A DNA stretch of 64,000 nucleotides from Cyanophora paradoxa CCMP329 (taxonomy: Eukaryota; Plantae; Glaucophyta): NCBI GenBank assembly GCA_004431415.1, contig QPMI01000399.1:150306-214305 (forward strand), written 5' to 3'. Position 1 is the stretch's first letter; every line of letters begins with the position of its first letter. Below are positions 570 through 64,000 of the stretch, piece after piece. A model generated the notes under the pieces. The model ran no database searches and was not told the origin of the DNA. It saw nothing but the letters and a program-made list of their open reading frames with translations. Made by a program: the position numbers and the translations under genes.

Positions 570-1014
570 CCCCCTCCTCCGACCGCCCCCTGGTCGTACC
601 CCCCACCCTTTCCGACCGCTGCTGATTCCCGTACCCGCCAGACTCACCGCGGGGTCGTCTACCCCGCCGGGCACCGCGCCGGCCAAGGCGGCACCTCCCG
701 CCCCGCCGGCGGCGGGGGCCAAGGCGAGCCGGGCGCCCCTCTCCCCGCCGGCCTCGTCGACGGTGGCGGCGCTGGCGGCGGCGGCCGTGGCGGCGGCGGC
801 GGCCGTGGCGGCGGCGGCGGTCGGGCGGCGGCCCTCGCTGCAGGGGCAGGACCTCAGCGCGCCGGCCCTGGGCCCCCGGCGCCCCTCGCTGGGCGTCGAG
901 ATCCCGCCCTCGGCAGCGGGGCCCCTGAGCCCGCGGGCGCCCGCGCAGCCGCCGCCGGTCTCGCCCTTCCTGCACCGCCGGCCCCCCCCCCCCCCCCCCC
1001 CCCCCTTTCTTTAC

Positions 1015-19204: not shown

Positions 19205-19404
19205 CCGCGGCTTTTTTTTTGAGAAGAGCCGGTATCCGGGCGGCTGGCATCGCCGCATCGGCCGCGGTAACTGGCCGAAGATGCAGGGCCAGGGCCCGCC
19301 GTACGAAGAGTACCGCCAGTACAGGCCGTCCACAGCACGAGGTGCGCCTCTGCAGCCGCGCGTTTGAATGTTTTCCTGCCGCGTCGCTCAGCCGCGCCCG
19401 TCGG

Positions 19405-39894: not shown

Positions 39895-40191
39895 GAAGAA
39901 GAAGAAGAGTATGTATAAGACACGCCCAAGCCAGCTGTACGGTTTTGACGAAAGGCGAAGGACCCGAAGGCCCAAGGCACAATCGACAGTGAACCAGCCA
40001 GACAAGGGTAGTGGCGGCGCAGACTATACAGTTCACCATGTATGCCCCGGCGGTCCGGCGCTCATACACGCAAACCTGGAAAGCAATCGGCGAAATCCAA
40101 TGCGGGCCTCTTCCTAATGGCGTGGGCACGCCTGCTCCTGGGCATCCAGCCACTCGCCTTGGCGGATGCTCCGTCGGCCAGTATTTCCGTT

Positions 40192-43100: not shown

Positions 43101-46100
43101 CACTTTATGCATTCGGATGTCCAGACGGATTCTGCTCGCAATTTCTGGTCCTACACATACCAGAGTGCTTGTCTCCAGGCTGGTACTCAAGTCAATTTTG
43201 AGGACTTTGCTGTGGAGAAGATGAAGCGAGCGGAGGAAGCTGGCATTCTCGAGAAAGTTGTGGTGAAACAAATTTGGAGTGATGATCTGAAGTTGGGTGA
43301 GCTGCCTGCTGAATTGGACGACAACAAACTTCGCTTTTTGCGTCGGCTGCGCAGTCTTTGGACCGACCGCACTTCATCTTTTTCTTCGGTTTCTCCTTTT
43401 GGAATCGGTTCTCTTCCTTTTGGATCGCCGAAAAATGTTTCTGGATTGAACGCTCTCACTTCGGAGCGTATTGAGTCTCTGATTGATGAGCGAGTCGAAT
43501 CGAAGCTTAAACAGTTCTCTTTGAAGGTGGATGATAAGCTCGATTCACTTCGTGACGAAACTCGTCGCCAATTGAGCGAGATTCGGCACGAAGCTCGCCA
43601 GCAGTTTGATGAGTTGCGCGATGACTCTCGTCGCACTTCTTCGATTATTTTGGATCGCATGGATCAGTTGTCTCGCCAGTTGCAGTATCGCCCTCGCGGT
43701 GATAGCTGGCGTGACCAGCCTCGTGGATCTTATAATTTTGATCGCAATCGTTCGAATGACAAATTTGTTAATTCTGGAAATGATTCTCGCAATTTTGGAA
43801 ATTCTTCTGGTGGTTATCGCGGTCGCTCGGCTGAGCGCCGTGGGTCGTCAGCTGACCCTAAGGGTCGGGGCGGTTCGCAGCCCCGCCCGGCGGGAAAAGC
43901 CTAACCCAGCCTGTTGTTGCCCGCCAGGCTGGGGCGGCCAAGAAACCAGCCATTTTCGGCGCAGCGAATGGACTGCGATCGTTGTTGCCTTTGATTACTC
44001 TCAACGAGTTCTTGAAGCGGCAGTCGTTGTCGGTCGCTCGCGCTTTCCCTTTCCCTTCCTTGGATGCTTCTCAATCTTCTTCTCCTATTTCTTCTTCTGG
44101 TCCCGATGTTACCCTTCAAGAGAATGATCCCATTATCCATGAGGTTGCTTCAGTGGAAATTCGCCCAGACATTCGTCCTGGCTATGGTCAAGCGCATTCG
44201 CGTGGAATTAATAATGCTTTGGATGATTCGAAAAGTGCTAGTAGAGTAGTGGTAGTTAGTGGAAATCGTGGAAAATTGGAACAGAAGTCCCTTTCGAATT
44301 TCTTTTCTGATGAGCTGCGATGGAAACGAGATGCCCCTGCTAAAAAGCATTTTATATCATCTGCAATCAATTCGAAGCCGGTTTCCCTGAAGTTGTCTTT
44401 TGATGATAATGGCCGAGCCTCAATTGAAATTTGTTCTCTGGACTCCCAGAGCCCTCCTGCTGAGCCTGCATTCGCAGGGCCGCGTCGCTTCATGACCTCA
44501 GCTCCGGGGAGGTCAACTCTGGACGTTTTCATTCAGGGCAAACATCACAAATTCCTTCTCGACAGCGGGGCAGATGTCTCTTTCATTCTTTCTTCTACTA
44601 TCTCTTCTCTTGGACTTCAAAATAAGGTGTTTAGAACTATTCACACTCCTTCTGTCAAGCTCCCGAATTCTGCATTGGTGGCTGTTCCTGGTGAGGTTCA
44701 TGTGGCTGCTACTATTGGGCCCCTCACCCGGAGTTTTCCTTTTCTTGTGGTTGATTTCCCGGGATACGCATTCGATGGCATTTTAGGCCAAGATTTCTTT
44801 TCTGATAATGCAGTCACCTATTGCAATAAGGACGCTGACAACCGATTTGTGGTCTTCGCCAAGCACCCAGACAAGCCAGTTAAGTGTGATATTCTCTCTT
44901 TCTTACCTGGCACCTCTACGCAGCCGAGTTCTCTGTCGCCGGAGACACCGGAATCTGACCCCTCGGACGACTCCAGCACTCGCAGAGTGTCCAAGGAACA
45001 TGGTCATATTCTGGAGGTTGCAAGGGAGGTTAAAATTGAACCTGGTGTGCAACGGAAGGTTGAACTGCAAGTCGGAGGCAACCGCTATTTGCCGGATTGT
45101 GAAGGTTTTCTTGTCAACTTCTACAAATGGGACGACAATCAGGAAATCCGTGTGGCAAACGGACTTGCTGCGTGTCGTGGAGGCAAAGTATATGCTTTAG
45201 TTTCGAATTTGAGCAATCGTTTTTCAGAACGACCAGTTGTTTTGAAGAAGGGCCGTGCAATCGCACGATTTGTCCCTGAGAAAAATCTCGAAGCTGAAGT
45301 ATTTGACTTGGCTCTCAATTTGAGTTATGATCAAGATGGGAACGGCAAGTATGTGAAGGTCGACCGGCCTGGCGAGGCCTCGACACCTTCGGTACCAACA
45401 TACTCTGCTCAGTACACTTGCGCCGACTCATTGCAAGTCAACTCTGCCGATGCCAAAATTGTTGGCAATTCTTCTGTGGAAATCGCGCCTCCAAAGTGTT
45501 TACCGGAGTCCGAGAATGCTTTTAAAAATGTTTCTGATAGAGTAGGTCTTCCCGAGTGTTCATATCCATATGAGGAGAAGTTAGGTAGTTTTTCGCATTT
45601 GAACGCTGTTCCGATCGATCAAGCTTCGACTATTATTTTTGATGAACTGCGGCAACGGTATGGCGCCGACATTATTGATGCTCTCCGAGCCGTCGATATC
45701 GGCAGTCGGGATGATACGCCTGCGGAGCGCGCTGTCATGGCTGACTTCCTTGCACAGAACTGGGACTTGGCCAAGGCTGCGCTTCCTCCGTACGACCCAA
45801 GTGCGCCTCATCCCCCGATCAAGCACTCGATCAAGACTGGGGATGCGCGCCCCATCGCGGAGCCCCCTCGGAGGCACTCGCAGACTGAACGAGAATTAAT
45901 TATCGATGAGACCAAAAAGTTGCTTTCTCGCAATCTTATTCGTCCCTCTCGCTCACCTTGGGCCGCTCCTGTGGTCCTTGTGCGCAAGAAGGATGGATCT
46001 CTTCGATTTTGCATTGATTATCGCAAATTGAATTCAGTTACTGCGGACGACGCTTATCCTTTGCCTAGAATTGATGATGCTCTCGAAGCTTTGACTGGAG

Positions 46101-48935
46101 CAATTTATATTACTGGTATGGATGCGCCTGATGGCTACTGGGGTGTTGAAATGGAGGAGGAGGACAAGGAGAAGACTGCTTTTCGGTCTCCCCTTGGACT
46201 TTTTGAGTGGAATGTTATGCCCCAAGGCCTGAAGACGGCCCCTGCCACTTTTCAAATGATGATGAACAGCGTTCTTGGCACTTATTTATATGTATTCATT
46301 TTGGTATATTTGGATGATATCTGTGTATTTTCGAAATCCTTGAAGCAGCACCTTGCTGATCTTCAATGGGTGTTTGATGCTATGAGACGGGCAAACATCT
46401 TCTTTAAGCCCAAGAAATCGAAATTCTTCAAGGCTGAATTGGAGTATCTTGGATTTGTAGTTACTAGACAGGGCATCAAGCCCTCTGCCACAAAGGTGGA
46501 GGCTGTTCGCAAGTTTGCGACCCCCAAATCTGTATCAGAAGTTAGGACTTTTCTTGGCATGACTGGATATTATAGAATCTTTGTACCTTTATATGCAGTT
46601 CTTGCGGCGCCACTCTATGATCTTTGCGCCAAGAGTTCACATTTTCATTGGACTGCTCGAGAGGATCTGGCTTTTCGGAAATTGAAAGAGTTGCTTTGTT
46701 CTGCTCCCATCCTTTCGCTCCCTAATTTCTCTAAGTCTTTCATTCTCAAAACTGATGCTTCTAAGACCGGAGTTGGTGCGGTCCTTTCTCAATTGGATGA
46801 ATTTGGGAATGAAAAAGTTGTTTCCTTTGCTTCTCACAAATTCTCATCTCCTGAGAAGAAGTGGAATCGGGAAGTTGTTATTGAATATGCAGCCGAGTCC
46901 CTTTCTGATGAGCAGCAGAAGTGGACAGTCACGGAGCAGGAGTTGTATGCAATTTGGTGGGCTGTCACCAAGAAGTTCCCTCAGTATCTCCGTGGCAAGA
47001 AGTTCATTATCAAGTCTGATCACTCGGCTCTTCAATATTTGAAATCGGCTAAGAAGTTGCCCAGTGCTCGCATCACTCGCTGGATTATGGATATGCAGGA
47101 GTTTGATTTCGAGATCCAGCATAAGCCGGGCAAGTCTAATGCTGATGCGGATGCTCTTTCTCGCCTGGTGCGAGTAGCAGTTCTTTCCTTGGAAGCGATG
47201 GAGTTTTCTTCTAATTTTTCGAGCGCTTTCTTGGATGCAATTGAGTTGCAGTTGAGTTTGCCCCCGGCTCGAATTCGGGATGAGCAAATAAATGATGTTA
47301 TTTTGGCGGATATGATTAAGTATTTAGAATCAGATATTACTATTGAACCGCAAGGTGTCAACAAGGAGGCCGAACGCCAACTCAAGAGCGGCAAGTTTTC
47401 TGTGCAAGATGGCGTTCTCGTCCACACTCGGCCTTCGGACAAACTTGTGCGTATTTGCGTACCAGATCATCTTAAATCAACTATTCTGTCATCGGTGCAC
47501 CGCACGCTCGGACATCCTGGAGTCGGCAAAATGTACAATCATCTCAAGCGGCGGTACTATTGGCGGAGTATGTTTTCTGATGTCGCTACATTTGTTTCGA
47601 CATGCGCCGATTGCCAGCGTGTCAAGAATTCCAAGACTGTACAAGCGGTTCCTCAATTTGAGATTCATGCTGACCGGCCGATGCAGCACTTGGAAATTGA
47701 CATCGTCGGGCCTTTTCCGAAGTCGAAGCAAGGCAACAAATATCTGATTACTATTATCGATGTTTTTACGCGTTGGTGCCATGCGGTGCCCGCGCGAACG
47801 AAGTCGGCTATGTCCGTCATTCGGGCATTGTTCGACCACTGGATACCCCTTTATGGAGTCCCCGCCAAGATTTCGTCGGATCAGGGCGGCGAATTCAAGA
47901 ATTTGCTTCTTAATGAACTGGAGCGTCTTTTTGGAATAAAGGCGGTCTTTTCTTCATCTTATCATCCGCAGTCACAAGGAGCTGTGGAAAAATTGAATGA
48001 CACTTTGGTCACTCGCCTACGGTTTTATATTGACAAAAATGCTTCAACATGGGATCTCTCTCTTCCATTTGCGCTCTTCGCAGTGCGCAATTTCATTAAT
48101 CCTACAACGGGCTACACTCCTTTCGAAATGTTGTACGGGAGGCCTTGTACTCTTCCTGCGGACTTGCTGGCTACTCCTGAAGTTCAAGTGACAACTTCTG
48201 AGCCTACTGGTTACCCAGCCGTGTTGGCTCGGCGGTTCTCTCGCATTTATACCGATATTCAGCAAGCTAAGGAGGAATATCTTGCCAAGCAGCAGCAGCG
48301 GCCTTCTCAACCAGTTTTCATTCCTGGAGAAGTTGTTGCTGTGAAGACCCCTTCCACTCGGCGGTCTGACAAGCTCTCCCACCGTTTCACTGGACCTTGG
48401 ACGGTGCTTAAAGATGTTTCTCATGGCAAGGGAGTTACTTTCTTGCTGGAGTATTCTGGTCCTAAGGAGCGTGGTTCTCCTGCTGAGGGCTCGCGTCAAA
48501 TGGTTCATGCCTCTCGGCTCAAGCCTTGGAGGGACCCTGATTGATCTCTTTCTTTTCTTTTCCTTCCTTGGCCTTGGCCAGCGCGGACGTGGCCTTTTTC
48601 TTACTTGGAGGAGAGTTGTTGCGAAGCGTAGTTTCCCTTCCCTTTCGCCATAGCGAATGTACCATGTACGCTAGTGATACCCCGTCCCTCGTGTAGGGGT
48701 ATGTCATTCAATCATACGCGGATATTACGCGTGTGTGCACGTGCGTCCCGGCACGGCACTGCGCCGTGTGCGGAAGTGGCTTAGAACCCATCGTATAGCT
48801 TCTAACAGCTTCTTATCAGCAGCACAGGCTCAGGCCCAGTCTTCTGATGCTCCTGCTAGCAAGCGTACTCGTCTTTCTGATCCTGAGTCTAACAACTCTT
48901 CTGTTGGTATGGCAGATGCTGCTTTTAATGAGTAA
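40192..48935 (+). CDS. Unknown 563-aa protein of retroposon A, interrupted by Gypsy (join 40192-41770, 48823-48935)
   Basis: Removing the Gypsy and one GCAG restores the frame ..RESAAAQAQAQSSDAPASKRTRLSDPE..AAFNE*. Homologous to the B protein. Confidence 0.8.
41771..41972 (+). repeat. 5' LTR
   Basis: TGTTGCG...CTTATCA, identical by eye to 48617-48818. Confidence 0.97.
41984..42224 (+). mobile_element. 241-bp LINE 3' UTR copy inserted in the Gypsy primer-binding region
   Basis: TSD CTGCC (41979-41983 / 42225-42229) and (CTT)n tail. Confidence 0.9.
42645..43904 (+). CDS. gag: Gag-like protein
   Basis: Position in the element, WTTFLKKFEDHF capsid-like motif, coiled coil and R/G/N-rich tail. 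No CCHC knuckle seen. Confidence 0.8.
   Translation: MYRRRLGPFVRSLVNDCINKAILLSAQAGRLADEDNVSVDIDQEDIMAAQPRVDLIKPLLRNLLLPKFEYSAPSRFLKNVRDVLKAIYVLPAVDTTPYSTWTAQAKVDFDYAWPHVQLKLQSVFNEAAGAHDFSRVVLECDNWTTFLKKFEDHFMHSDVQTDSARNFWSYTYQSACLQAGTQVNFEDFAVEKMKRAEEAGILEKVVVKQIWSDDLKLGELPAELDDNKLRFLRRLRSLWTDRTSSFSSVSPFGIGSLPFGSPKNVSGLNALTSERIESLIDERVESKLKQFSLKVDDKLDSLRDETRRQLSEIRHEARQQFDELRDDSRRTSSIILDRMDQLSRQLQYRPRGDSWRDQPRGSYNFDRNRSNDKFVNSGNDSRNFGNSSGGYRGRSAERRGSSADPKGRGGSQPRPAGKA
43892..43941 (+). promoter_or_regulatory. -1 programmed ribosomal frameshift signal
   Basis: G_GGA_AAA heptamer in gag frame, 6-nt spacer, perfect 9-bp stem CCCAGCCTG/CAGGCTGGG. The -1 frame is open into pol. Confidence 0.85.
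43892..48544 (+). CDS. pol: Pol polyprotein (protease, dUTPase-like spacer, RT, RNase H, integrase)
   Basis: LLDSGA, RFCIDYRKLN, MPQGL, YLDD, TDAS, HHCC, DDE core (IDIVGP..SDQG..VEKLN), terminal GPW..HASRLK. No chromodomain. Confidence 0.97.
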   Translation, partial: GKSLTQPVVARQAGAAKKPAIFGAANGLRSLLPLITLNEFLKRQSLSVARAFPFPSLDASQSSSPISSSGPDVTLQENDPIIHEVASVEIRPDIRPGYGQAHSRGINNALDDSKSASRVVVVSGNRGKLEQKSLSNFFSDELRWKRDAPAKKHFISSAINSKPVSLKLSFDDNGRASIEICSLDSQSPPAEPAFAGPRRFMTSAPGRSTLDVFIQGKHHKFLLDSGADVSFILSSTISSLGLQNKVFRTIHTPSVKLPNSALVAVPGEVHVAATIGPLTRSFPFLVVDFPGYAFDGILGQDFFSDNAVTYCNKDADNRFVVFAKHPDKPVKCDILSFLPGTSTQPSSLSPETPESDPSDDSSTRRVSKEHGHILEVAREVKIEPGVQRKVELQVGGNRYLPDCEGFLVNFYKWDDNQEIRVANGLAACRGGKVYALVSNLSNRFSERPVVLKKGRAIARFVPEKNLEAEVFDLALNLSYDQDGNGKYVKVDRPGEASTPSVPTYSAQYTCADSLQVNSADAKIVGNSSVEIAPPKCLPESENAFKNVSDRVGLPECSYPYEEKLGSFSHLNAVPIDQASTIIFDELRQRYGADIIDALRAVDIGSRDDTPAERAVMADFLAQNWDLAKAALPPYDPSAPHPPIKHSIKTGDARPIAEPPRRHSQTERELIIDETKKLLSRNLIRPSRSPWAAPVVLVRKKDGSLRFCIDYRKLNSVTADDAYPLPRIDDALEALTGAIYITGMDAPDGYWGVEMEEEDKEKTAFRSPLGLFEWNVMPQGLKTAPATFQMMMNSVLGTYLYVFILVYLDDICVFSKSLKQHLADLQWVFDAMRRANIFFKPKKSKFFKAELEYLGFVVTRQGIKPSATKVEAVRKFATPKSVSEVRTFLGMTGYYRIFVPLYAVLAAPLYDLCAKSSHFHWTAREDLAFRKLKELLCSAPILSLPNFSKSFILKTDASKTGVGAVLSQLDEFGNEKVVSFASHKFSSPEKKWNREVVIEYAAESLSDEQQKWTVTEQELYAIWWAVTKKFPQYLRGKKFIIKSDHSALQYLKSAKKLPSARITRWIMDMQEFDFEIQHKPGKSNADADALSRLVRVAVLSLEAMEFSSNFSSAFLDAIELQLSLPPARIRDEQINDVILADMIKYLESDITIEPQGVNKEAERQLKSGKFSVQDGVLVHTRPSDKLVRICVPDHLKSTILSSVHRTLGHPGVGKMYNHLKRRYYWRSMFSDVATFVSTCADCQRVKNSKTVQAVPQFEIHADRPMQHLEIDIVGPFPKSKQGNKYLITIIDVFTRWCHAVPARTKSAMSVIRALFDHWIPLYGVPAKISSDQGGEFKNLLLNELERLFGIKAVFSSSYHPQSQGAVEKLNDTLVTRLRFYIDKNASTWDLSLPFALFAVRNFINPTTGYTPFEMLYGRPCTLPADLLATPEVQVTTSEPTGYPAVLARRFSRIYTDIQQAKEEYLAKQQQRPSQPVFIPGEVVAVKTPSTRRSDKLSHRFTGPWTVLKDVSHGKGVTFLLEYSGPKERGSPAEGSRQMVHASRLKPWRDPD
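48617..48818 (+). repeat. 3' LTR
   Basis: Identical to the 5' LTR. Confidence 0.97.
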
Positions 48936-50417
48936 TCCTGAGTACTACATGACCGTATATTTTTCTTTGTCCCTGCGGGGCCTCCTGATACCCTGGGGCC
49001 GCCCGACAGGGAGCGGGCCGTCACGGGGATTCAGGCCCTTCCTATGTGGCGCCGTCGGGTGTCCATATAGGGTGCCCTATTTCCTTGCTGGCGCCCTGGG
49101 GGTGGTGGCCCAGGGTCCTGTATGCGGCTCCACTCACTCCCCATGCTAGTGGGTCCCTGACGGGCCTTGCACGTCCCATTCGGGGCCTCTGCGGCTTTGT
49201 CATACCCAGTCTTGCTGGCATGGATGTGTCTACTGCATTTCTCTCTCTCTCTCTGCCTCTTCCTAATGCCGGCCTGGGGTATTCCCGATCCCGTTCACAT
49301 TTGTAAGCCCGAATTGTAGTGTTAGAGAGAGAAAGATTAAAGAACCATGTCATCAGCATCATCAACACAGTCAATGAGCACCACAGGAGAACCAGAATCA
49401 TCACTGAAGACCGGAAGGTCAGCAGGAGAAGAAAGATGCGAACGTTTAACAGAAGGAAGAAAAGATGGGTCACTGGATCCGTCCGTGAAACCATCAGAGA
49501 AGCAAGGAAGAGCAGGGGAAGAGGGTCGACGGCGCTTCAGGGTGAAACCAGGGGGCAAATCAGGGTCAGTGTCCATAGGAACAGAGGAAGAAGGAAGAGA
49601 TGATGAATGGCTCCCAACATCGAGAGCATCGTCAGTGATGTCAGCAGCAACTACAGGAGAAGACAGAGGTAATTCAGCGTCGAGTTCGGGATCAAAGAGG
49701 TCAATAATCACTTGAGGAGAGAGTGGAGGCAAACTGGTATCATCAACCGTATCATCGACAACGTTAGACGCTTGCACAGGAGGTCCCAAATCATCGACAC
49801 GACGACGGCGAAGAGGTGGCTCGTCTTCAGTGTCAAAATCCGGCGGGGGGTGAGGGGGAGTGTGCAGGGGTGATGGAGGCGGAGGAAGCATAGGGTCAAG
49901 AGCAGGAGCAGGGTCTGGTGCCTGAGGAGGGTCGTCGTCGTCCGAAGAGATGCTTGTGGAAGAGTCATCAGGAGCATCAGGGCCCAGGTCTGAAAGGTCA
50001 GAGGAGTCCGAACCATCATCAGGAGGGGACATATACCCTGCAAGATCTTCCTTTTCAAGGCGTTGCAGCAGGACAGGCCGCACACTGGCATAGGCAAACT
50101 GAGAGAGAGAGAGAGCAAGTAAAAGACACGCCCACGCCAGCAAGACTGGGTATGACAGAACCGCAGAGGCCCCTAATGGAGCTTGCAAGGCTCTGTCAGG
50201 GACCCACTAGCGTGGGTAGTGATGAGAGATGCTCTTGAGAACCTGCGAAAGACAAGCTGCACAAAGTCCCTACCCGGGCCGTAGGGTCCCCATGCAAAGA
50301 AAAAGCCCTAACTTCCTGAACTGACCTGCTCCCTAACAGGCCAGACAGGGTGTTAGGGAAGACGGGAGAGAGGGAAACCGAAGACGATCATTCAAGATTA
50401 GAAGTACAGAAAAAAAA

Positions 50418-52231
50418 TTACACAATTGTGTCATTAGAACCAGAAGGAGTAGAGGGATCAGAGGGGCGAGAACGCTTAGCACTAGGGCTACGGCCAGTGC
50501 CATCGAGATGCTGACCTTCCTCAAATGAATCAGAAAACGATTTCTCAAGGGCCAGAAGAAGAAGAGTATGTATAAGACACGCCCGAGCCGGTTGTGCGGT
50601 TTTGACGAAAGGCGAAGGACCCGAAGGCCCGAAGCAAGGGCCAGCTGCTTGCGAGCCTCATCATAAAAAGCATCGAGGCGGGGGCGCACAGAGGCAGGCA
50701 AAAAGTAAAACATGGGATCCTGATGGAAGTGGTACAAGAAGGTGTGCTCATCAACATCAAGAATGCTGTAATTTTTGTCAGGCTCCTGGCAAGGGATCTG
50801 GTAGCAAGGAGAGGTGGAGGCAAAAGAGTAAGAAGAAGGATCGAGAGCCTTGCCATTGTGAGCAAGAGAGGAATAATACTCAAGAGAAGAGTACTCAGGA
50901 AGAAGAGTCTGCACATAAAATTTGTGAATGTAGTTATCCGAGCCAAGAATCATGAGGGAACGCATGGCGAGGGGCCGAGCGGGCCGAGGCTTGATGAAAC
51001 TAGTACGACGCTCGAGGCTCTGGAAGAGCATAGAAGCCAAGGGCACTTTCAAAATGAGACTAAGATGAGCACGATCGGTATGAGCAGCAGGGAAATCACC
51101 AAGCTCAGGGCGACAAAGAAGATCATAGCGGGAGCCAGAGCCAGTGAAAGTGGTCTTAGCGACCATATCAAGTACAGGCTGAGTAAAGGCAGCTGCCAGA
51201 AAAACTGGAGAAGGAATGGACTTATCCAAGCCAGCGAGTTTGAAGGGATTGAAGGGGATGGTGTTCTCAGAATTCAGCTCTACACGCTCAACAGGAAGCG
51301 AAGACATAAAGACACAATCTGGCTTGGAAAGGTTAAGTGCCATCGTTTTGAGTTCAGCCAGGAAGGCTTGGGCGCCAAGGCGAATGAGGAAGCGGGGTGG
51401 CTTAGCACCAGAGGGGCCAGCACCATTGGAGGACTCAGGGGCAGTACGGAGAACAGATTGATAATAAGAAAGCTCGATCGGGAAAAATTGGTCTACCACA
51501 TCAGAGACACCAACAGTCTTAAGGCCATAAAAGACATCATATGCTTGAAGGAAATGGGGCTTGGTCTGCAAAGGAGTGAGGGTCGAAAGCATGGTACGAG
51601 CTGGGTGAGAAATTGGAGTACAGTTGAAAATCGAAGACAAGGTACGATGATGAGCTAAATAGGCGCCAAAGCCACCAACAACTGAGCGATAGTAAAACTG
51701 ATAAGTGAAAGCATTGAAGGTAGCACCACTATAGGAATCCTGAGAAGTGGACTGCTTAACAAAGCCGTGCTTCGCGGAGGAGGACCATGGGTGCTGAGAG
51801 AACATGGAATTGATGGGAGCAAGGCGGTTCTGGAAGGCCGAGAGGCGGACAGATTCAGGGAGGTCACGGCCAAAGTCTGCAGGTTCATTCACGATGACAC
51901 CTTCCTGGATACAGAAGCGCATGGCGACGGAGACATCATCGAAGGGCTTGCAAGAGCGAAGCGCATCGGCAAGGACAGTCTGAACATGCATGTACTTGGG
52001 CAGGCCGCCAATCTTGCGGGTGACGGGCCGCGTCATGAACGCGGCAAACTCGCGGACGCGAGGAAGGTGGTGGTAGTCAGGGACGCGGGAATTGCCCGAA
52101 AGCGATGGTGACTGAGCGTCAACAGCGAAGAAGTCGGCAACCTCCACAGAACCCTCAAGTGCACGGGGAGCCGGCGGCGGTCCCTGCTGCTGGCGGCGCT
52201 GCCCCGGAGCACGGGGCGGATTGGCGGACAT
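50418..52231 (-). CDS. Unknown 574-aa protein of retroposon B (frame broken near the C-terminus by an 89-bp insertion)
   Basis: Runs MSANPPRAPG.. to ..KQLALEKSFS..SAKRSRPSDP..NDTIV* once the insertion is removed. Homologous to the A protein. Confidence 0.8.
50556..50634 (-). mobile_element. 79-bp LINE tail insertion
   Basis: 10-bp TSD CAAGGGCCAG (50546-50555 / 50635-50644). Confidence 0.92.
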
Positions 52232-53111
52232 TCTAAAAGCTGCGTACAGTGGAGCAAAGGTCAGGATTGTCCGAGATGGAAAGATTTGAACGTTGGCTGG
52301 GCGAGCCACAAATCGGCGTCTAAGCGCGCAGCTGGCGGCCAGGATCTGCGTAAAGAGCGCACCCGTGCACACGGGGCGAGAGGTATGTGGGCCAGAGGCC
52401 AGAAATGGGGCCGACGGCCAACGGGGGGGGTACGGCAAACTGAGCAACAAGGGGGCTAGGGGCCAGATCGGGGCTAGGAGCAGGCTGAGCGATATGTTCG
52501 CAATGCTCATAAGAGGCTAGGGAATGGTCATAAGCACGAGCAGCGTCCAAGAGATTAGCGCAAAATGAGGAGTGAGATGGATCAACCGTAGAAATGAAAC
52601 GGAAATCCCCACGGACATAAGTGACTTTGAATCGAGGTAAACGACGAGGAAGCATGTCCATGAAATCATCGAGCTCGCGAAACAAGGCAGACATCAGAGT
52701 GGCCGTCTTCAAACCGGTTTTGGAGGAAGGCGTAAGGGGCAGCTGTATGTCAGGGTCCATCGCAAACGTAGCAGCAGCTTCAGAGCGACCTGTATGATAG
52801 GCTAGAGAATACGAGCAAAATGACGTGCAGACCAAGAATCCGAACAACCTGCCACTCCCAGTTCTGGAGAAACATCCAAGTATCAGAGAAACGGACCGAG
52901 CCAGTGAGCAGCCAGGCAACAAAGCGTGCAGAAGGGATGGGCATCGGCTGGAGCTGCAGGGCATGGAAGAGAAGCGACCAGAACTGCTGCACTACGGGGC
53001 AAAGAGCAAAGACGTGCAGCGCGTTGCAGTGCCGGTGGCAGACCGGACATAGCGAAGAGAGAAGCTCACTGTCAAGCAAATTCGCCGAAGCGGGACGCTG
53101 AAGATCACGTG

Positions 53112-53493
53112 AAAAAAAAGAGAGAGAAATGCAGTAGACACATCCATGCCAGCAAGACTGGGTATGACAAAGCCGCAGAGGCCCCGAATGGGACGTGCAA
53201 GGCCCGTCAGGGACCCACTAGCATGGGGAGTGAGTGGAGCCGCATACAGGACCCTGGGCCACCACCCCCAGGGCGCCAGCAAGGAAATAGAACACCCTAT
53301 GTGGACATCCGACGGCGCCACATAGGAAGGGCCTGAATCCCCGTGACGGCCCGCTCCCTGTCGGGCGGCCCGAGGGTATCAGGAGGCCCCGCAGGGACAA
53401 AGAAAAATATACGGTCATGTAGTACTCAGGATTACTCATTAAAAGCAGCATCTGCCATACCAACAGAAGAGTTGTTAGACTCAGGATCAGAAA
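53112..53493 (-). mobile_element. 5'-truncated copy of retroposon A
   Basis: Near-identical reverse complement of about 48874-49248, with a CT/T tail. Confidence 0.9.
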
Positions 53494-53742: not shown

Positions 53743-55772
53743 ATGAAGCAGTCAAAGCGAAAGGAACCCAGCCTCTGGGATGACGGCTTCGACGAGGCCC
53801 GACGTCGGCACCGCTGGCACGGCAAGCGACCCGACAGCAGCAGCTCGTGGGCCGGCAAGGGCAACATGAAGCGTGTCAACAAGATCACTCAGCAGGCGCG
53901 CAAGGCGAAGGAGCCCAAGCTCCCTGACCTCGACATCCTCAAGGGCGAGCACCCCGCGGCAACGGTCCGCTGCCTGGACACCAGCGGCCGCGCCTACCAC
54001 GTTCGCCTTGGCGACTTCGTCATCTGTTCAGTTAGCTCAGACACCCAGCTGTGTCCAGAACTCAGCGTCGTTCGCCCGAAGCCCTTCCATTTCCCGCGCC
54101 CAGGTGAAACGATTTTGGCGCGAGTCGAGGGCGAGTTCCCAACACAGACGAAGGCGAAGCGCGGCGACTTCAACTACTCCGTCAACGGCGTCATCCTTCG
54201 GCGCTTCGTGCGCCCGGAGGACTCCGATGTGAAGGACTGCGGGCTCGGCAGCGTGATCATCAAGGCAGACGGGGAGCAGGCAGCCGTGGCCATCGCAAAC
54301 CACCTCATCTACTACTCGAACGTGACGGTCCGCCCGCCGCGCCCGCGCCCCGTTCCAGCGTCCGATGCCCGTGCGCGCAGGTTCACGCACCCGCGAAGGT
54401 GGTGGCCGCGGACGAGTACAAAGCCCTCAACCACGCCGATCCCCACATCTACGTCTGTAAGCAAATCATGACGTTCCCGGGCGACGGCTCCTTCCAGTTC
54501 GACGTCGCCCTCGCCTTCAACGCGAGGCTCAAGCGAGTGGCGAAGAAGAAGATGGCGTGCTTCCTCCGGCCGCTGTCGAGGCCGGAGGAGCGCGTGGAGG
54601 CGATTGGCTACCTTCAGGACGCCGCCGCGAACGCCCTCAAGCGCCGGAAGACCGGGACGCAGCTTGTCAACGTCAAGATCCCGGTGGCCGGGCCGGCAAT
54701 GTTGGTCTGCGGCTCTTATGACTCGTTCGAAGTTCTTTTTCCTATCCTCTAACGGTGCGCATCGCAGGAGAACATCGTGGCGCAGGTCGCGCACGTCGCC
54801 ACGCCCATCGACCCGAAGACGGGCCAGCCGATCCCGGTTGACAAGCTGCCGGCGGCGAATCGCTTCGTTATCGAGCTTCCGGACCGCGAGACCGCTGCTG
54901 GTGGAAGCCGCTTCCTTTTTCCCGCTCGCTGTTCTTTTTCCGACCTCTTTGCAGCTGTTCTCGGTCCCTCCGGCGTGGCGCAAGCGTCCAAGCGCGTCTG
55001 CAAGCGGGACGCGGACGGGAAGGCGATCCGGAAGCACAGCGAGATGCAGACCGTCACCGTCGAGAAGGCGTACGGCGGCTTAATCGTGCCGCGCCACACG
55101 GGCTCCCATGACGTCGTCCAGTTCGACGAGCGTGCGCCCGGCCCGCCCTCGCCGCGCCGCTCGCTTACGAAGCTCTGCTCCTTGGGCGCGGCAGGTCCCG
55201 GTCGGATCGTGGCCACGAAGCGCTCGGGCAGGAAAGGTGGGCACGTCACGCTCGAGCTTCCGAGCTACGAGTACGGCCCCGACGGCGAGCGCATCGCCAG
55301 CCTCGCGGGGCCCCTCGCGGCTGTCCCCGTGAAGCGCCCGCGCCGGTGCCGCGCCGGCGCCAACACCGTCGCCAAGGCGCCGCCTGTCCCGAAGCAGCCC
55401 CTTCAGAACCTGCCGCCGCCGCCCTGCCGGCCCCCGCCGCCGCCGCCCTGCCGGCCCCCGCCGTCGCCGCCCCGCCGGCCCCCGCCGCCGCCGCCCTGCC
55501 GGCCGCCGCCGCCGCCGCCCCGCCCGCCCCCGCCCCGCCGGTCGCCGCCCTGTCGGCCCCTGCTGCTGCTGCCCCACCGGCCGCTGCCGCCCTACCTGCC
55601 CCCGCCGCATCCGCCTCGGTCCCCAAGTGCGCCCCCTCCCCCTCGCCCCCGCTCGGCTACTTGCTCGCCTAATCCTGCAGCAGGAAGGATCGCGCGGCAC
55701 AGCTCGCGGCCGCGGTGGCGGCGCGCAAGAGGGCAAAGTCGTGAAGCTGCTACTGAGAATCGCACTATCTAG
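53743..55772 (+). CDS. BAH-domain protein, spliced, convergent with the RAG1-like gene
   Basis: YHVRLGDFV..ILARVE..LRRFVRPED..(intron 54328-54380)..AKVVAADEY..IYVC follows the BAH consensus order. C-terminal frame is uncertain. Confidence 0.65.
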
Positions 55773-55811
55773 GTTACAAGGTGCGCTATGTCTGGTCCAA
55801 ATCCATTTCGT

Positions 55812-58800
55812 CTATTTCCCCTCCGCTAGATCGTCTGCTAGAACCTCTGCTAGGGCCCTATCATCGAAATCGAGCATGTTGGCGCCCTCATCCTCCGCCT
55901 CCATCTCCTCCTCCGCCTCCTCCTCTGCCTCGGCGTCGTACTCGGCGGTCTCCTCCTCCTCCTCCTCCTCGTCCCCGCTCTCCTCGGGCACCTCGTCCTC
56001 CGGCACCGGATCCCCCTCCTGCAGCTCAATATCCTCGTCGATCTCCTCCTCGTCCGCAGGCAGGGGCACCGCTGCCACCTCCTCGCCCCCCGGCGGCGCC
56101 GCCGCCGCCCCTTCGCCCTGCATAGCCGCTGACCGGTGGGGACGGGCCGCAGGTCGGGGGATGAAGGGCCCATCTGGCCAGGCCTTGGCGGCGACGGGCG
56201 CGTCGTACTCGGCGTGGGCAGCGTCCTTCCCGCCGGCGCTCGCCTCCGTCATGTTCCGCATCCACAGCGCCAGGCGCCGCCGCTGGTGCGTCATGATCTG
56301 CTTGAGCATGTCGAGGTCCTTGTTCCACCCGCCACCGAGAGACGTGACGGTGTGTCGCAGGCGCCGAAGGAGGCCCATGTAGGACTCGATGACCTCGCAG
56401 CTCCAACGGCCGGGCGCGTTCGTGTTGTCGACGCGCGCCCAGAACGCGAGGTGCGCAAGCGTCGAGTGCATGTAGCGTGTGAAGATCTTCCATAACGGGA
56501 AGTGTGTCTCCATCAGGCCCTGGAGCTCGGCGACGGCCTCGATAACTTGCTGCCGCGCCTCCTCGTCGGGCTTCATGTTCCGCTCGTACTGGTAGATGAT
56601 CTGGCGGAGCTGCCAAATCTCGTGCATGCCCCTCGTCTTCTCGCTCCAGCTCTCCTTACTGTCGCCGAAGCAGATGCTGAAGAGGGTGTCGGGCGCCTCG
56701 GGGTCCTCCAGGATCTTCTTGGCGGTGTTGGCGGAGATCTTCTGGAAGAACTTGTAGGTGGCCCCGTTCTCGGTCTTCTCGAACTTGATGTTCCGCGCGT
56801 ATTTATCGCGAAGATGACGCTGCAGGTCTTCGATGCGCTTCTGCTGGTCCTCGGAGGCACCACAGGCGAGGGCGAGGAAGAAGTAGACGAAGAACCCGGC
56901 CACCCAGCTCTTGATGCCGTGCAGGGCGTCGTCGAGCCGGACCTGAGGTGCGCGTTGGCGTCCGCTGAGGCGAGGTGTCGCGGGCTTCTCACCTCGACGG
57001 CAGCGACGGGCAGCATGCTGTTCGGGAGCGGCTGCAGGAGGGCGTTGGCGTCGTGCTCGGGGGTGCGGATTCTCTGTTCGCTGGCTGGAGGGAGGCCGTC
57101 CCGATCCCGCGGCCCTGCTGCGCGCACGACTTCGACCGCCGAGCACTCGGACCTGCAGTAACGTGAGCCCCATGCCGAATCTCAGCGCGTGTGACTCGGC
57201 GAACTGACCCGCGTCGGTGGACAGAATCGCAGTGCGGGCACAGGTCGAAGCCGAGGAGGACGCGGAGGAACTTGTAGTCGCCCGTCACCAAGAATTCGAC
57301 CTCGACGGGCTTGTCGTGCTCGTACCCGGGGATCAGGGTGAGCGGGTTCTCGTTCAGGTACTCGACCATGTCGGCGAGGGGCTTGATGCGTGGGCGCAGG
57401 TTCTCCTCGCTGTCGCTACCGCCGAAGAGCATTAGGGGCAGGAGGCGTAGCAGCTCTGAACGCCCTTCAGCGGGTGGTACGCCTGCGTCCCGTCCTCCTC
57501 GATGACGTAGTAGCCGTCGACGATTGCCACGATGCAGGTCATGCCGTCGGTCGTGGAGACGCTCTTCCCGCGGAACGCGATCGTCCCGTCGCCCGCCAGG
57601 CGGACTCGAGGTCTGATCTTCTTCCCCCTGTGCTTGTGCAGCGGGACGAAAGCGCTGATGAGGGCCGACAGGGCGGGCGTCGGCGTGACAGCTCTGCGGG
57701 GCGGCGGCGCTGCCGCCTCTCCGCCCGCCGCCGGCGCTGCCGCCTCTCCGCCCGCCGCCGGCGCTGCGCTCGACGGAGGCACAAAGAGCTCGAGCATGAC
57801 GCCCGGCTTGCCCTTGTTCTCCTCGTCGCCGACGCCCGCCGCTGTTTCGACGATCTGCACGATCTGCACCGCTCGGTGAGCCTCGTCCCTCACCCCCGCC
57901 CCGCGCGCGCGCGCCGCGCCTTCTCGAGGTCATCGTTGACCTTGCCCGTAGCTTCGTGATGCAGTGCTTCGACGGGAGGAAGGCTCGCAGCCCCACGAAG
58001 TGCTTCTTCAGGGCCTTCTTGAGGAGCTTCGTGAACTCAAAGTACGTCGCCTGCCCCGGGTCGGTTTAGAACGGGATGGGGGGTTAAACATTCGAGAAAG
58101 GGCGCACGTCCGAGATGCAGTGGCGGTCCTTCCACTCTAGAATCTCGCAGTCGGGGAAGGTGTCCCGCAGCTTCCTGCAGGCGATGCTCATCGCCTTCTT
58201 CACTTGCAGCTGACCCGATTTGCTCGTTTCCAGGGCTCGTTGGGCCTGCGGACGGTGGTTCAGAAAGGTGCTCTTCTCCAACGATTTTGTAGCCTATTAA
58301 AGTACGATTCTCGGTAGCTCTTTTTATGTATAATAACGCGCACTGCGTGTGGCCCGATGATGCTCACGAGGCGGCGTGCCTCCGCCTCCAGCGCCTCCCT
58401 CCTCTTCTGATAGGCGCCCTCCTCCTCTCCTTTGTTCCTGGGGCGCCCTGGATAAGCATGCATATGCCTGCGCGCGCGCCGCCCCGCCTTGTACCTCGCG
58501 AAGTTCTTTTTAAACATGGGGAGGCGGATCTGGATGTCCGGACTCGCAGCGTTTAGAATCGTCGAGAGCAGCATGCGGAGGAACCGCGTGCGCCGCTGCC
58601 TGGACGTATCCGAGCATCCCTTCCCAGGGACCTGCCTAGCTATGCGCGAGATGGTCGCTGCACGCTGTGCCGAAGTCCGCGGGACCTTGGCGCGCTTCGA
58701 CTGGTGCTCCTCCCTAAGCTTCTTGTTCTCCGCCTCAAGCACTGCGATGCGCTCGTCGCGCGCTTTGAGCGTCGCCTTGCGGACGATCCGCTCCTCAGGC

Positions 58801-58892
58801 GGCACATCTTCCTTGCCGCGAGCGCGTTTCGGGCGGTGCCGGGGCCGGGGCCGGCCGCGGCGCCGGGCTCGGCGCCTCATTAAGAACTGCAT
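55812..58892 (-). CDS. RAG1/Transib-like DDE transposase, intron-containing, with apparent single-base frameshifts
   Basis: GDG (D at 57588), PLMLFGGSDSEENLRPRIKPL, TGDYKFLR (D at 57277), CPHCD, DALH, LQRHLRDK, ISANTAKKIL, TRYMHSTLAHL, GRWSCEVIES (E at 56385), LLRRLR, DMLK. All are colinear with the RAG1 core. Confidence 0.85.
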
Positions 58893-59762
58893 TCGTCTGC
58901 TCGCGGCCGGGCAGAGAGCATACACTCGTAAGCGCGGGCAAGTCAAGTCATGACATCGAATTTGAATGAGCGGCATACCACGTCGGCGCCGAACGCGCGA
59001 CGACCGCGCTGCTGCTGCTGCTCTGGGCTAATCTGAGGCGATTGCGGGCTCGCTGGAGCGATGGCGACCCGGGTGGCGAAGCTGGAGGGCTCTGCAGGAT
59101 GCACTGGAGGAACACAGCCACTGCGGTGGCCTCTTGAAGCGCCGCCGTGCAAGCTAAGCTATGCGGATACAATGGAGACGCAATGCCGCGCGCCTCCAGT
59201 TCCAGGTGGGCGTTTCGGCTGTGGGTGAGCACTGCGATGATCCGCATAAGCGCCTGGTACGCGACCGACGCGTCCGCCATCTCTAAAACGACTGCTGCGG
59301 GCGCTGGAAACGTTTGGGGCGCGGGCTGGGCCGCGGGACGGGGCGCGATGGGTCGCTGCATCGCGCGGGCGGGTTCAAAACTCGGAAAAAAAGATCGCGT
59401 GTACCTCCCCTGCCATCTGCGGAAGCGGCAGCTCCGAGCGCCGCGAGCAAGCATACACATCCGCGACAGTTAGGCGCCGAAGAGCAGCAGGCGAGCCAGC
59501 ATGCGCGATAATGCGCAATTGCGATGCATAGCTACCTTAGGCGAAGCGGCTGGTCCACCCGCGCGGTCCTTGCCGGCCGCGATGCTCGCTCGTCGATATG
59601 GGTATGACGCGCTAAGCAAGGGGAGCATGCCCAGACTGGGTACGCAAACTGCTGAACGTCCAACTCCAGCTGAACGCCCTGCAGCTGGTGGGCCTGAAGC
59701 AGCCTCAAGCGTTAGCTATGTCGCATCGACAGTGTAGCTATGTTAGCTGTGGAGCGAAGCAT

Positions 59763-60495
59763 ATGCCCGCTGACTACGTGTCCGAGGAGGAGGACCAGGA
59801 GGAGACCATCAACGCGCCGTGCAATCGCCCAATGACTTCGTCTGTCATCGAGATCAACAGCAGCGACTCGGAGAGCGATGGACCAGCGGCAGCGCGCCGA
59901 GCGCAGGGCGCGCATGAAGGCGGACGAGGAGCGCGCGCTCGAGGAGGAGGATGAGATCAGGCGGCGCCACCAGGCAGCTTTGGAGGTCAACCTCGCAATA
60001 GAGCGCGACTCGGTGAGGCCATACAAGCTGGCCGAGCTCAAGCAGTTGCTGGAGTACGCGCGCGCGTGGATGCGCGAGCACGAGCAGCTGTACGAGCAGT
60101 TCGAGGTCGCGCTGGCGCACAACAACCTCCTCGAGGCCATTAACCTGCGGTCGGAGATCCGCAAGCACCGCAGCACGGCGCGCTTCTGCGGGCAGGACCC
60201 CCTCGGGCTCTACGAGGAGGCGGCCTTCAAGCCTCTCTATGACAACGTGACGGCCTTGCAGCGGCGGGCGGGGCAGATGGAGCATTTCGGCGACAATCTC
60301 TTCAAGTGCGCGGAGCACTTCCAGCGGGTGCGCATCCGGCAGCAGCAGGCGGCGGCGGCGGCGGCGGCGGAGGCGGCGGAGGCGGCGGCGGAGGCGGACG
60401 GGGCTGCTGCTGCTGCTCGGTGCAAGCGCCGCCGCCTGCGTCGCGGCGACGGCGTGCTCGTCTCGCGGCCGGACGATGCCGACGACGAAGCGTAG
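59763..60495 (+). CDS. Hypothetical helical/coiled-coil protein, divergently transcribed from the RAG1-like gene
   Basis: Protein-like composition in ORF 59878-60495. Acidic N-terminus sits in another frame. Confidence 0.45.
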
Positions 60496-60496
60496 C

Positions 60497-60790
60497 GCCG
60501 TTAGCCGCCCCCGCCCCGCCGTTAGCCGCCCCCGCCCCGCCGGCCCCCGCCCCGCCCCGCCGGCCCCCGCCCCCGCCCGCCGGCCCCCGCCCCCGCCCCG
60601 CCCCGCCCCGCCCCCGCCCCGCCCCGCCCCCGCCCCGCCCCCGCCCCGCCCCGCCCGCCCCGCCCCGCCCCGCCCCCGCCCCGCCGCCCCGCCCCCGCCC
60701 CGCCCGCCCCCGCCCCGCCCCGCCCCGCCCCGCCGGCCCCCGCCCCCGCCCCGCCGGCCCCCGCCCCCGCCCCGCCGGTCGCCGCCCTGC
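60497..60790. repeat. (CCCCG)n-type GC microsatellite
   Basis: Directly visible. Confidence 0.9.
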
Positions 60791-62264
60791 CGGCGACGGC
60801 GTCCTCGTCTCGCGGCCGGACGATGTCTGCAGCTAGAGTCACCAGCTGCAGTCTGCACCTGGCTTGAATACGACAGATTTACTAGTTATTCTGCTATCGT
60901 GCGCGCACCGTGGCACCGTGGCACCGTGGCACTCAGTGACTACCGAGAGTGGCGGGCGGGCTGGCGGGGCGGGCTGACAGGGCGGGGCGCCTGGCGGACA
61001 GTCGGGGGCCTCCGGGACACTCTGGCAGTCCGGGGCCTCGGGAGCCTATTTTCGCGCCATACAAGGCCTCCCCCGACCCTGCAGCTGCATAGGAGGCCTT
61101 ATATAGTGCTTTAAAAAGGTTCTCTAAGCTTTTTTCGATGTCTCCCAGCTCCTGGGGCGATGGGCCCATTTGGAAGGGCCAAAAGTCAGCAGAAGACTAG
61201 CTGTAACGTAGTGTATAGGCGTATGATGAGTCATATGGTATGACGGGTTAAATGGGCCCATCGCGGGGGCTTTGTGCAGGGCACTAAATAACGCCGTGTG
61301 ACGCCTCTACATCTTGAATAAAAAGTTCTAATCAAGATACGAGGCTGCCGTGCTTCAATCGCAAGCCTCGGAGTGCAGATTCCCTGGCAGATCAAAAATT
61401 GCGAACGCGATACCGGGGTCGCCGCGCGCTCGCAGCCTTGCGAAACCTTGAGAGCGGATAAGATTGCCGCCGACAGCGAGCCCAGCTCCCCGCTCGCAGT
61501 GCAGCCGCGCGCTTAAGGCGCCGGCCAGCCACTTGGCCCGGCTGCAGCTGCTCCGGCACGGGCGGCCTCAGCCAGCCGGCACCATGCTATCGCAGCTTCA
61601 GCCATGAGCCTCGGAGAGGGCGGAAGTCTCCGAGGCTCGGTCCGCGATCCAGGGCAGGCGTGCGTATGTTCCAAGTTCGCGGCGAGGGCGTGCGCCTCGC
61701 CGAATCGTTGTCGCGGCGTGCGCCTCGCCAGGTGTACTACAGTGCCACAGTGCCACGTTGTCGAAAGCGCGAGCCGCTCAGTCAGCCGAGTTTCCTCCGC
61801 TGGCCAACCGGGTACGCATACGCCCGGCCCGGCCCGGCATGCCACGAGAGCGCCCGCGGCGCTTCACGCGGTCTTCCTTCATCTCCGTGACCCGCTTCTG
61901 CGAGACGAGGTCGGTGGGGCAGCGGCTGCTTGCCGCAGTGCATGGATTGCCAGCCCCAGGTGCGAGGCCTTGACTCATCCCGAGCTTCCCGAGCAGATTA
62001 CCAGCGCGCCGGCGTAGCTCAGCGCCGATTGGGTCTGGCACGGTCCGCCTTTGCGGCCGACCCCGGTTCCGTGCCCAAGCCGTTCCGACCTTCCGAGCAG
62101 ATTACCAGGCGCGCCGGGCGCACCTAGCTCAGCGTCGCGAGCTTATAGGCTAGGCTTGCTCGGAGGCTCCGGATGCACGCACAGTTAGCCAACCCAGCCG
62201 CGCCCCGCGTCCCCGCCCGGCTGTCGTGTGGGCGACGCATGCGCAAAAGGAACACAAATTTTTC

Positions 62265-63911
62265 TCATCCGATGAGAGCTCTAGCTATGCAGGACGAAGC
62301 GAGCGGGCCGGGGCTAGCGCCCGATGGCGGGCGCCTCGAAAGGCGACGTCTCCGGCGGCACAGCAGCGTGTAGCTGCTGGACCGCGGCGACCCACCCTGC
62401 GACCCTAGGCCCCGGGGTTCCCGCATGAGCACGTCCTCATGTAGAGATACTCGATAACGGCCTCCAGCTCCTCCACCTCCTTTATGTACATGCGCTCCTC
62501 CTTCCGCCACACCTTCGCCTCACGCTCCAACTCCAAGTCCCAATTCCTCTTCATCCTTGAGACCTGCGCCGCGCCGCGTTACGCGCCAGCGGGCGCACGC
62601 ACGCGTGTGGGCAATCGCGGACCTTGTTTTCCAAGTCATCCACCTTCGTCTGCAGCGCAGCGTTCTGGTTCTGCAGCTCCTCGCACTCCTCTTCGAGGTT
62701 TTTGACCCGAGTCGCTCTCTGCGGGCGCCGGAGGGACCGCCGTCAGCAGCGCATTGCGGGCGCGCGGCGCGGGCGGCGCGGCGGCCGGCGGGCTCACCAG
62801 ACTGGCGTTGAGCTGCATCATCTCCTTCTCCAGCTGAGCGATCTTCTCCTCCGTGAGCGATCTGCCGCTGCTTCTCCTGTTGGCCCACCGCAGATCAGGG
62901 AGCTCCCGCTCCAGGAGCTGCACTTCTGTTGGAGCTCCTCACGCTGCGCCGGTGCACGGAGGAACACGTCGACTTTCGCCTTCAGTTGATTGGCGAGCTC
63001 CGCGCCAGTTAGACCCTTGTCTAGGACATCCTGCGGCCGAATCAGCGAGGCAAGCTGCGGGCGAAGCGCACGGCGCGTGAAACGGCGCGCGCACACGCTG
63101 CTGAAGGTACTCGATCGCTTCAAGGAGCTTTGGACGCCATGCGAACCGCATCGGAAACCCGCTTGCAGCGGTGAGCCTCCGATAGAGTGCGGCGTCTCCT
63201 CCTCGATGCGAAAGCGGTGCCGCCCGGGCTTGTCCCAGGGGGTGAATCGATCTTCCTCCTCGCCCGTCATCTCGACATCGCACTTGCGCCGCTTGCACTG
63301 CTGCTTGGTGGACGTGGCGGGCTTCTTCGGGGCTGGCTTCTTCGCGCTGAGCTGGCAGGCGACGGCGCGACAGAGGGATCGTCCATATACCGCTCCATGG
63401 CAACGAAGGGATCCTCATATTGCTCGCTCGGTGCCGCCGCGGGCGAAGGCTGGGAGGTCGCCGCCGCTGCCCGCTTTGCGACTCACGCGCTTAGGCATGT
63501 CCACGGGGTCGCTGGCGAGGCCGCTGCGCCGGCGGCTGCGTGCGTGGAGGCGTGGCCGGCTGATCATGCGAAGGCTGCGATTGCGAGGGCGCAGCTACTA
63601 CCCGCTTGCGACGCGGGCGATCAGGCGTGTACACGGGGGTCGCTGATGAGGCAGCTGCGACAGGCGGCGTACACGGCTGTACAGGCGTACCCCCCCAAAG
63701 GCGTCCCTGGCGTCTCACAGCAGCCGCTGCCGGGGCTCTGCTCGAGCTCTGAGCGTACTGGCGAGACTTGTGGGGAGTCGCTCCCGCCCGCCGGCTCCGC
63801 CGCGGGAGGCGCCAGCGCGACCGCGGCCGTCGCATGCGCAGCTGGCGCTGCATGCGCAGGCTGAACGACTTGCTCGCTCAAAGCTGCGTCGCCAAAGTCG
63901 TCTGGATTCAC
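62265..63911 (-). CDS. Hypothetical spliced coiled-coil protein (5' end probably outside the window)
   Basis: Protein-like segments KKPAPKKPATSTKQQCKRRK, ELANQLKAKVDVFL, EEKIAQLEKEMMQLN. Confidence 0.35.
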
Positions 63912-64000
63912 GTCCTCGCCGAGGTCGTCCTGGCTGCCGCAGGTGCTGCCGCCAATCTGGCCGTGCCGCGGCCTGCCATCGCTGGCGCCGCCCAGCCACG

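Follow-up and report, generated by a model that had tools for sequence, protein, structure and literature searches.

RAG1 falls within the CMCT clade of transposases (CACTA/EnSpm-Mirage-Chapaev-Transib), which is defined by a DDE triad together with C(2)C and H(3-4)H motifs (PMC12730594, Kojima 2025). Because these are common to the whole clade, features shared with RAG1 mark the wider clade, and ESTA, which matched RAG1 by HHpred, nonetheless forms a lineage of its own (PMC12730594). The pelagophyte Aureococcus has both RAG1L and RAG2L, and proteins resembling Transib occur in bacteria (42), fungi (20) and plants (39) (PMC9435367); the remark in an earlier note on the DNA studied here, that few such enzymes are described far outside animals, was thus overstated.

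The transposase gene described here lies on the minus strand of Cyanophora paradoxa contig QPMI01000399.1, within the 64-kb stretch of DNA that was analysed as a whole (the window), and its motifs follow one another in RAG1 order (Table 1). We consider it very probable that the gene belongs to a young, multi-gene family of cut-and-paste DNA transposons of the CMCT clade, placed by its fold on the RAG1-like side. Every motif quoted in the earlier note is present on this strand where it had been located, and in the same order; the proposed gene start at 58892 had to be corrected, to the ATG of exon 1. The gene contains 6-7 introns and has a GC3 of 0.865, and with a read-backed extra base near its end it closes at 55786. 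The 50-nt GT-AG intron that had been singled out as host-type (56943-56992) keeps the frame and is absent among the RNA joints listed; where other copies have a complete model in public data, that model splices it. The in-frame 57-nt intron in exon 2 overlaps the GRPR motif. Splicing of this kind, together with models of the family on 13 Cyanophora paradoxa contigs, supports the earlier placement in a eukaryotic flagellate, and a bacterial contaminant was rejected on the same grounds.

Table 1. Coordinates of the transposase gene, its motifs, and the transcript and neighbouring gene around it (positions in the window).
Feature	Position	Strand	Basis or remark
Stretch missing from internally deleted copy elsewhere in genome	58399..63596		RNA loose end and model P0014
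Exon 1, ATG at 59280	58979..59280	-	public models P0012/P0015 match; base missing at 59058, restored by DNA contigs
Intron	58897..58978	-	short, fits frame
Exon 2: coiled-coil/basic N-terminal part and possible NBD-like stretch	58344..58896	-	bases missing at 58830 and 58846
In-frame 57-nt GT-AG intron	58438..58494	-	one RNA contig splices it; model P0016 retains it
G of GRPR	58446..58448	-	within the 57-nt intron
Intron	58246..58343	-	short, fits frame; acceptor 58294 as alternative
Exon 3	58108..58245	-	alternative acceptor 58294 also in frame
Intron	58051..58107	-	short, fits frame
Exon 4: DDBD-like stretch	57920..58050	-	base missing at 57944; donor GC 57919 or GT 57940, acceptor 57864
Intron	57864..57919	-	short, fits frame; GC-AG; GT donor at 57940 keeps phase too
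Exon 5: pre-RNase H/RNase H part, D1, D2, C-x-x-C	57209..57863	-	base missing at 57443
RLAGDG	57602	-	translation of 54500-60500
D1	57588..57590	-	assigned by motif
LPLML	57441	-	translation
VTGDYKFLR	57288	-	translation
D2	57277..57279	-	assigned by motif
CPHCD	57240	-	translation
C-x-x-C	57240/57231	-	
Intron	57153..57208	-	short, fits frame
Exon 6	56993..57152	-	between introns 57208-57153 and 56992-56943
Intron	56943..56992	-	short, fits frame
Exon 7: DALH, ZnB helical domain, H-x4-H, catalytic E, CTD, acidic tail without Cys	55786..56942	-	base missing at 55817
DDALHG	56933 region	-	translation
LQRHLRDK	56825	-	translation
ISANTAKKIL	56738	-	translation
TRYMHSTLAHL	56480	-	translation
H-x4-H	56468/56453	-	
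GRWSCEVIES	56411	-	translation
Catalytic E	56385..56387	-	assigned by motif
DMLK	56312	-	translation
Spliced antisense RNA over transposase gene	55684..58398	+	RNA contigs, GT-AG joints 55627-58233
Convergent neighbour gene, tail to tail	53743..55744	+	~2 kb, short introns; no Pfam match in exon scans

The assembled reading frame is interrupted, and the frameshifts reported earlier near 57445 and 57945 were compared with reads; both DNA runs (Illumina contigs) restore a base there (57443 and 57944). The same two runs each add one base at 55387, 55817, 58085 and 58830, and further single bases at 58846, 59058, 59495, 60995, 61031 and 61167. All 12 of these listed differences are a single base missing from a short run, seen at essentially full depth in coding and non-coding DNA, and no substitution relative to the window is among them. 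The Logan DNA contigs from which they come collapse about 30 copies into one and lose rare variants, so that the restored bases represent a merged-copy sequence. Once these bases are put in, the exons downstream of 58892 form one stop-free frame of 929-945 aa, or about 1,030 aa when exon 1 is included. One alternative is that the window copy is a dead, decaying element and that the frameshifts are real mutations, and the five frame breaks and shifted stop in the assembled coding region, along with the collapse of copies in the Logan contigs, are compatible with it. We regard this as quite improbable, however, given the uniform nature of the differences, their indifference to coding, and the finding that models of other copies break elsewhere. 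The published assembly is based on PacBio reads, probably of a haploid strain (PMC6704402), and since the gaps are of one base in short runs, assembly error is the simplest reading; the frame breaks thus look like long-read errors.

The DDE triad and the C2H2 zinc site of RAG1 have counterparts in this protein, as had been proposed, and these are arranged in RAG1 order with similar spacing. The D1-D2 spacing is 104 and the D2-E spacing 262, compared with 108/254 in mouse RAG1 (PMC4914335), 99/211 in HzTransib and 108/213 in Nozomi. The CMCT signature is present, the DDE triad by motif and the C(2)C and H(3-4)H elements between D2 and E; judged by this protein signature, the transposase belongs to the CMCT clade and is predicted to work like RAG1/Transib. 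The ordered motif pattern, at loose spacing, was recovered in 0 of 20,000 shuffles, a result that lends weak support because the pattern was written after the sequence had been seen.

Alignment-based searches returned little. The window gene was searched exon by exon, the exons being joined only for checking frames and stop-free lengths, and public EukProt models of the transposase family served as the longer queries. Nothing significant was found in Pfam with the exons or the public models (DUF1280 appeared at E 0.2-0.4 only), phmmer against the PDB was blank, and Pfam, phmmer and Foldseek gave no RAG1 or Transib match at E<=0.001, using single-sequence queries of limited sensitivity. Among 1.84 billion representative proteins there were four matches, at 88-98% identity, all of them forms of this same transposase protein, which is therefore an orphan among 1.8 billion representatives. 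Word-based protein searches yielded nothing beyond the transposase family of Cyanophora paradoxa, scans of viral, metagenome and GTDB (bacterial) contigs revealed no relative, and no orthologue was found outside this species.

Searches by learned features and by fold gave a different picture. With ESM Atlas features, the C-terminal half scored 0.95, its best named matches being RAG1_ZnH2/ZnC2/C clusters, and the N-terminal half matched RAG1 clusters of the RNase H and pre-RNase H regions at 0.92; named matches below RAG1 were DUF1280 (0.89) and Tnp2 (0.88), most matches were unnamed cnidarian or arthropod clusters, and both halves come from one source. Single-sequence AlphaFold models had a mean pLDDT of 45-47, with values of 70-84 in a portion of the ZnB region; the RNase H part stayed below 50 and failed to fold, and the geometry of the active site is accordingly a prediction from the motifs. 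When ZnB models were compared with 48,161 chains, the top five in both runs were zebrafish and mouse RAG1 and BbRAG1L, with Z scores of 8.7-9.6 and 9.1-10.6 and an rmsd of 3.9-4.5 over 144-150 residues, although a Z near 10 is modest for a helical domain and the two models are dependent, sharing one sequence. HzTransib scored Z 6.9 and 7.6, among unrelated helical matches. Foldseek against the PDB ranked RAG1 first at E 0.025, mixed with 14-3-3, and the Atlas shape search gave noise (TM <= 0.20). Model residues 142..311 pair with mouse RAG1 791..951, placing H297/H302 on H937/H942, and the Asp of DALH presumably falls on RAG1 position 792. Mouse RAG1 residue numbers follow PMC4914335.

These data bear on whether the motif likeness could have arisen by chance in a GC-rich frame unrelated to RAG1. 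Every alignment-based search is blank, as such an explanation predicts, but the feature search and the fold search each return RAG1 unprompted and in register, and a chance likeness is largely refuted; we give it very little credence. The earlier expectation that profile and structure searches would recover RAG1 or Transib is thus borne out in its structural part, a RAG1-type ZnB fold, and not in its profile part, which gave no significant match. In the same way, the proposed RAG1/Transib-lineage enzyme holds as a DDE enzyme with a zinc site at the level of fold (features, fold search and motif register), whereas its membership of RAG1L or Transib goes beyond these data.

The likeness to RAG1 and to the RAG1L of ProtoRAG (BbRAG1L, AanRAG1L) extends to domain order, the DDE and C2H2 zinc ligands at similar spacing, the ZnB fold (14-20% identity over ~150 residues), and a neighbouring gene placed tail to tail. 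The Cyanophora element differs in having 6-7 introns, a span of more than 10 kb and no detectable sequence match, with no RAG2 kelch partner found and no canonical RSS in the window. RAG1L proteins carry an NBD with GRPR/K, and the one GRPR noted here coincides in part with the 57-nt intron. The CCGHC tail that characterizes nearly all invertebrate RAG1L and subgroup I Transib proteins is also lacking: no Cys follows DMLK, and the last 120 aa are ~40% D+E. Transib (HzTransib, Nozomi; subgroups I/II, Tao et al. 2022) shares the catalytic and zinc set and a weaker ZnB match (Z 6.9-7.6), although its D2-E spacing is 211-213 rather than 262, it encodes ~700 aa in a 3-4 kb element rather than ~1,030 aa plus several genes, and the CTT1 tail of subgroup I is absent here. 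Other CMCT lineages (EnSpm/CACTA, Mirage, Chapaev, Plavaka, ESTA, Lanisha; PMC12730594) have the DDE triad and C(2)C and H(3-4)H between D2 and E in common with this protein, extra genes are common among them, and there are weak leads to DUF1280 and Tnp2 clusters; there is no sequence match to any, and we found no Cyanophora family in that study.

Could the protein nevertheless be a true RAG1L or subgroup I Transib, that is, a deep branch of the RAG1 lineage without RAG2L whose CCGHC tail was lost? Several features are suggestive: the D2-E spacing is closer to that of RAG1 than to those of HzTransib and Nozomi, the fold search gives greater Z scores for RAG1 and BbRAG1L than for HzTransib, the named Atlas matches place RAG1 above DUF1280 and Tnp2, a GRPR motif stands ~84-100 aa before the DDBD-like motif, and a serine follows the catalytic E, as S963 does in RAG1. 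To our knowledge, structures within the CMCT clade have been solved for RAG1, BbRAG1L and HzTransib alone, and we know of no EnSpm, Chapaev, ESTA or Lanisha structure in the PDB; a fold search therefore cannot rank the other CMCT lineages and RAG1 wins by default, just as ESTA too matched RAG1 by HHpred. Moreover, there is no match at the level of sequence, the Atlas matches are mostly unnamed cnidarian and arthropod clusters, the tail is absent, the window contains no canonical RSS, and the GRPR is cut by an intron that is spliced in RNA, in a window whose frames contain GRP[RK] once per 2,800 residues. We consider true RAG1L or Transib membership unlikely, if deserving of attention, and prefer the broader placement in the CMCT clade. 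On the present evidence, the accepted account of how V(D)J recombination arose stands as before.

Cyanophora is unnamed in PMC9435367, and we found no literature report of the family for this genus, so that the family is probably undescribed but of an already known transposase type. It extends RAG1-fold transposases to glaucophytes and illustrates a highly diverged family missed by standard searches. If active, it would offer a RAG2-independent enzyme with which to ask which features of RAG1 (the long ZnB, GRPR, the acidic tail) predate the capture of RAG2.

The only transposase proteins recovered are EukProt models of Cyanophora paradoxa (EP00741); they are near-identical and come from 13 named contigs, with one further model that carries no name. 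Between DALH and the CTD, 8 of 10 models match the 214 aa of the window exactly, and the complete model that diverges most has 5 differences in 460 residues. DNA contig depth over the gene is ~1,600-1,700 and 366-393 in the two runs, compared with 52-65 and 12 on apparently single-copy contigs, and the ratio of ~30 suggests about 30 copies, a rough figure as contig depth is not a copy number. Model P0014 joins 63998-63759 to 58397, and one RNA contig loose end (X19) joins 63597 to 58398; as this junction is no splice site, some copies must carry an internal deletion, and the element extends to 63998 or further. There is scarcely any likelihood that the gene is instead a domesticated host recombinase for programmed rearrangement of host DNA. 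It is intron-rich and host-like in GC3, and its acidic tail without CCGHC recalls vertebrate RAG1, but ~30 near-identical dispersed copies with a deletion derivative, little sense RNA, and the lack of any orthologue found beyond Cyanophora paradoxa argue otherwise. It behaves as the transposase of a multi-copy element, and not as a domesticated recombinase.

On the left, a nested retroelement ends at 53493, and on the right the transposase element continues past position 64000. Near ~53606, where one of the element's DNA contigs starts, there is an exact RSS heptamer (CACAGTG) at 53597 and a second CAC word at 53609, each preceded by GTA; they are not followed by a nonamer, and the window has 8 occurrences of this heptamer. 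Neither an inverted partner of these CAC words nor an exact RSS12 or RSS23 was found in the 64-kb window. For comparison, CMCT elements are characterized by 5'-CA..TG-3' termini and a target duplication of 2-5 bp, ProtoRAG by asymmetric RSS-like TIRs and a 5-bp TSD, and Transib by a CACAATG-type TIR and a 5-bp TSD, with variation in some lineages. Upstream of the transposase and divergent from it, in the stretch of high depth, is a single-exon orphan ORF of 205 aa (59878-60495, plus strand) for which an EukProt model is present and RNA contig cover is low. A C-rich low-complexity array of GCCCC-type units with a 46-nt direct repeat on its flanks lies at 60499-60800, where read depth collapses, and more coding-looking frames are present at the far end of the element (62400-63998, minus strand), and P0014 joins one part of these, 63998-63759, to the core of the transposase.

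RNA contigs cover the gene mainly as plus-strand antisense RNA, the direction being deduced from GT-AG ends as the contigs are unstranded. Among the joints listed, beyond which 88 more were recorded, at least 13 antisense GT-AG joints are the same in two presumed RNA runs from different studies, with 11 introns of 49-76 nt, one of 192 and one of 372, and the 57-nt intron in exon 2 is the only sense joint. No RNA contig depth was seen over exon 1 at 59100-59299. A coding role for the antisense RNA was rejected (its longest ATG frame is 78 aa, and its longest open stretch is 301 aa, P ~0.05 with random phases), and selection for its splice sites found no support (8 strong donors compared with 9.0 expected from synonymous shuffles, 8 of 11 in use). 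A host spliceosome that takes whatever sites a long transcript offers fits the observations.

The stop of the convergent neighbour gene (55742-55744) is ~40 nt from that of the transposase, and because the first two antisense joints lie in or just behind this gene, read-through from it is the likely source of the antisense RNA; no bridge between the two was seen among the listed contigs. The linked RAG2L of ProtoRAG is a kelch propeller, often with a PHD. The neighbour gave no Pfam match for kelch or PHD, although the transposase too goes unrecognized by Pfam, and we found no RAG2 partner. In the Cyanophora paradoxa genome, UTRs commonly overlap (PMC6704402) and repeats are CpG-methylated (PMC12344493). 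A plausible scheme is that the long spliced antisense RNA, probably a read-through product of the neighbour, holds down transposase output, and that CpG methylation of repeats may lower it further, which would make the locus a natural case of a transposase gene under spliced antisense RNA. By analogy with RAG1, BbRAG1L and HzTransib, a transposase dimer would bind two element ends with two Mg ions held in the DDE centre, would nick and then open the flank through a hairpin, and would insert the element with a short target duplication, all without a RAG2 partner. On the most elaborate reading, the family would be a deep branch within the RAG1 lineage that lacks RAG2 and is still mobile in a glaucophyte that can be cultured; its layout of GRPR and acidic tail would resemble that of vertebrates, splicing could take the GRPR out, and built-in spliced antisense read-through from a convergent partner gene at the RAG2 position would silence it. 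We view this combination as improbable and retain the simpler reading of a CMCT element.

The remainder of the window contains other repeats and host genes. Inverted repeats of 375 nt (48874-49248 and 53119-53493, 99% complementary) surround an ORF of 725 aa (50333-52510, minus strand) without Pfam match, and related pieces are present at 50108-50222, 39269-39341 and 15357-15420, along with a similar ORF at 40042-41850; these pieces appear to be copies of one repeat family nested in each other. A Gypsy-like LTR retrotransposon is recognizable from its ORFs at 41771-48820 (gag-like 42645-43904, pol 43982-48544), and its identical 204-nt LTRs (41771-41974, 48617-48820) indicate a recent insertion. 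Host genes identified by eye from the ORF list at 7178-36441 include an IFT80-like flagellar gene (7178-10042), a cytochrome c heme lyase-like gene (18539-19333), and genes for an ankyrin protein (24520-25650), a Prp16-like helicase (~27200-31400) and a Mo25-like protein (35680-36441).
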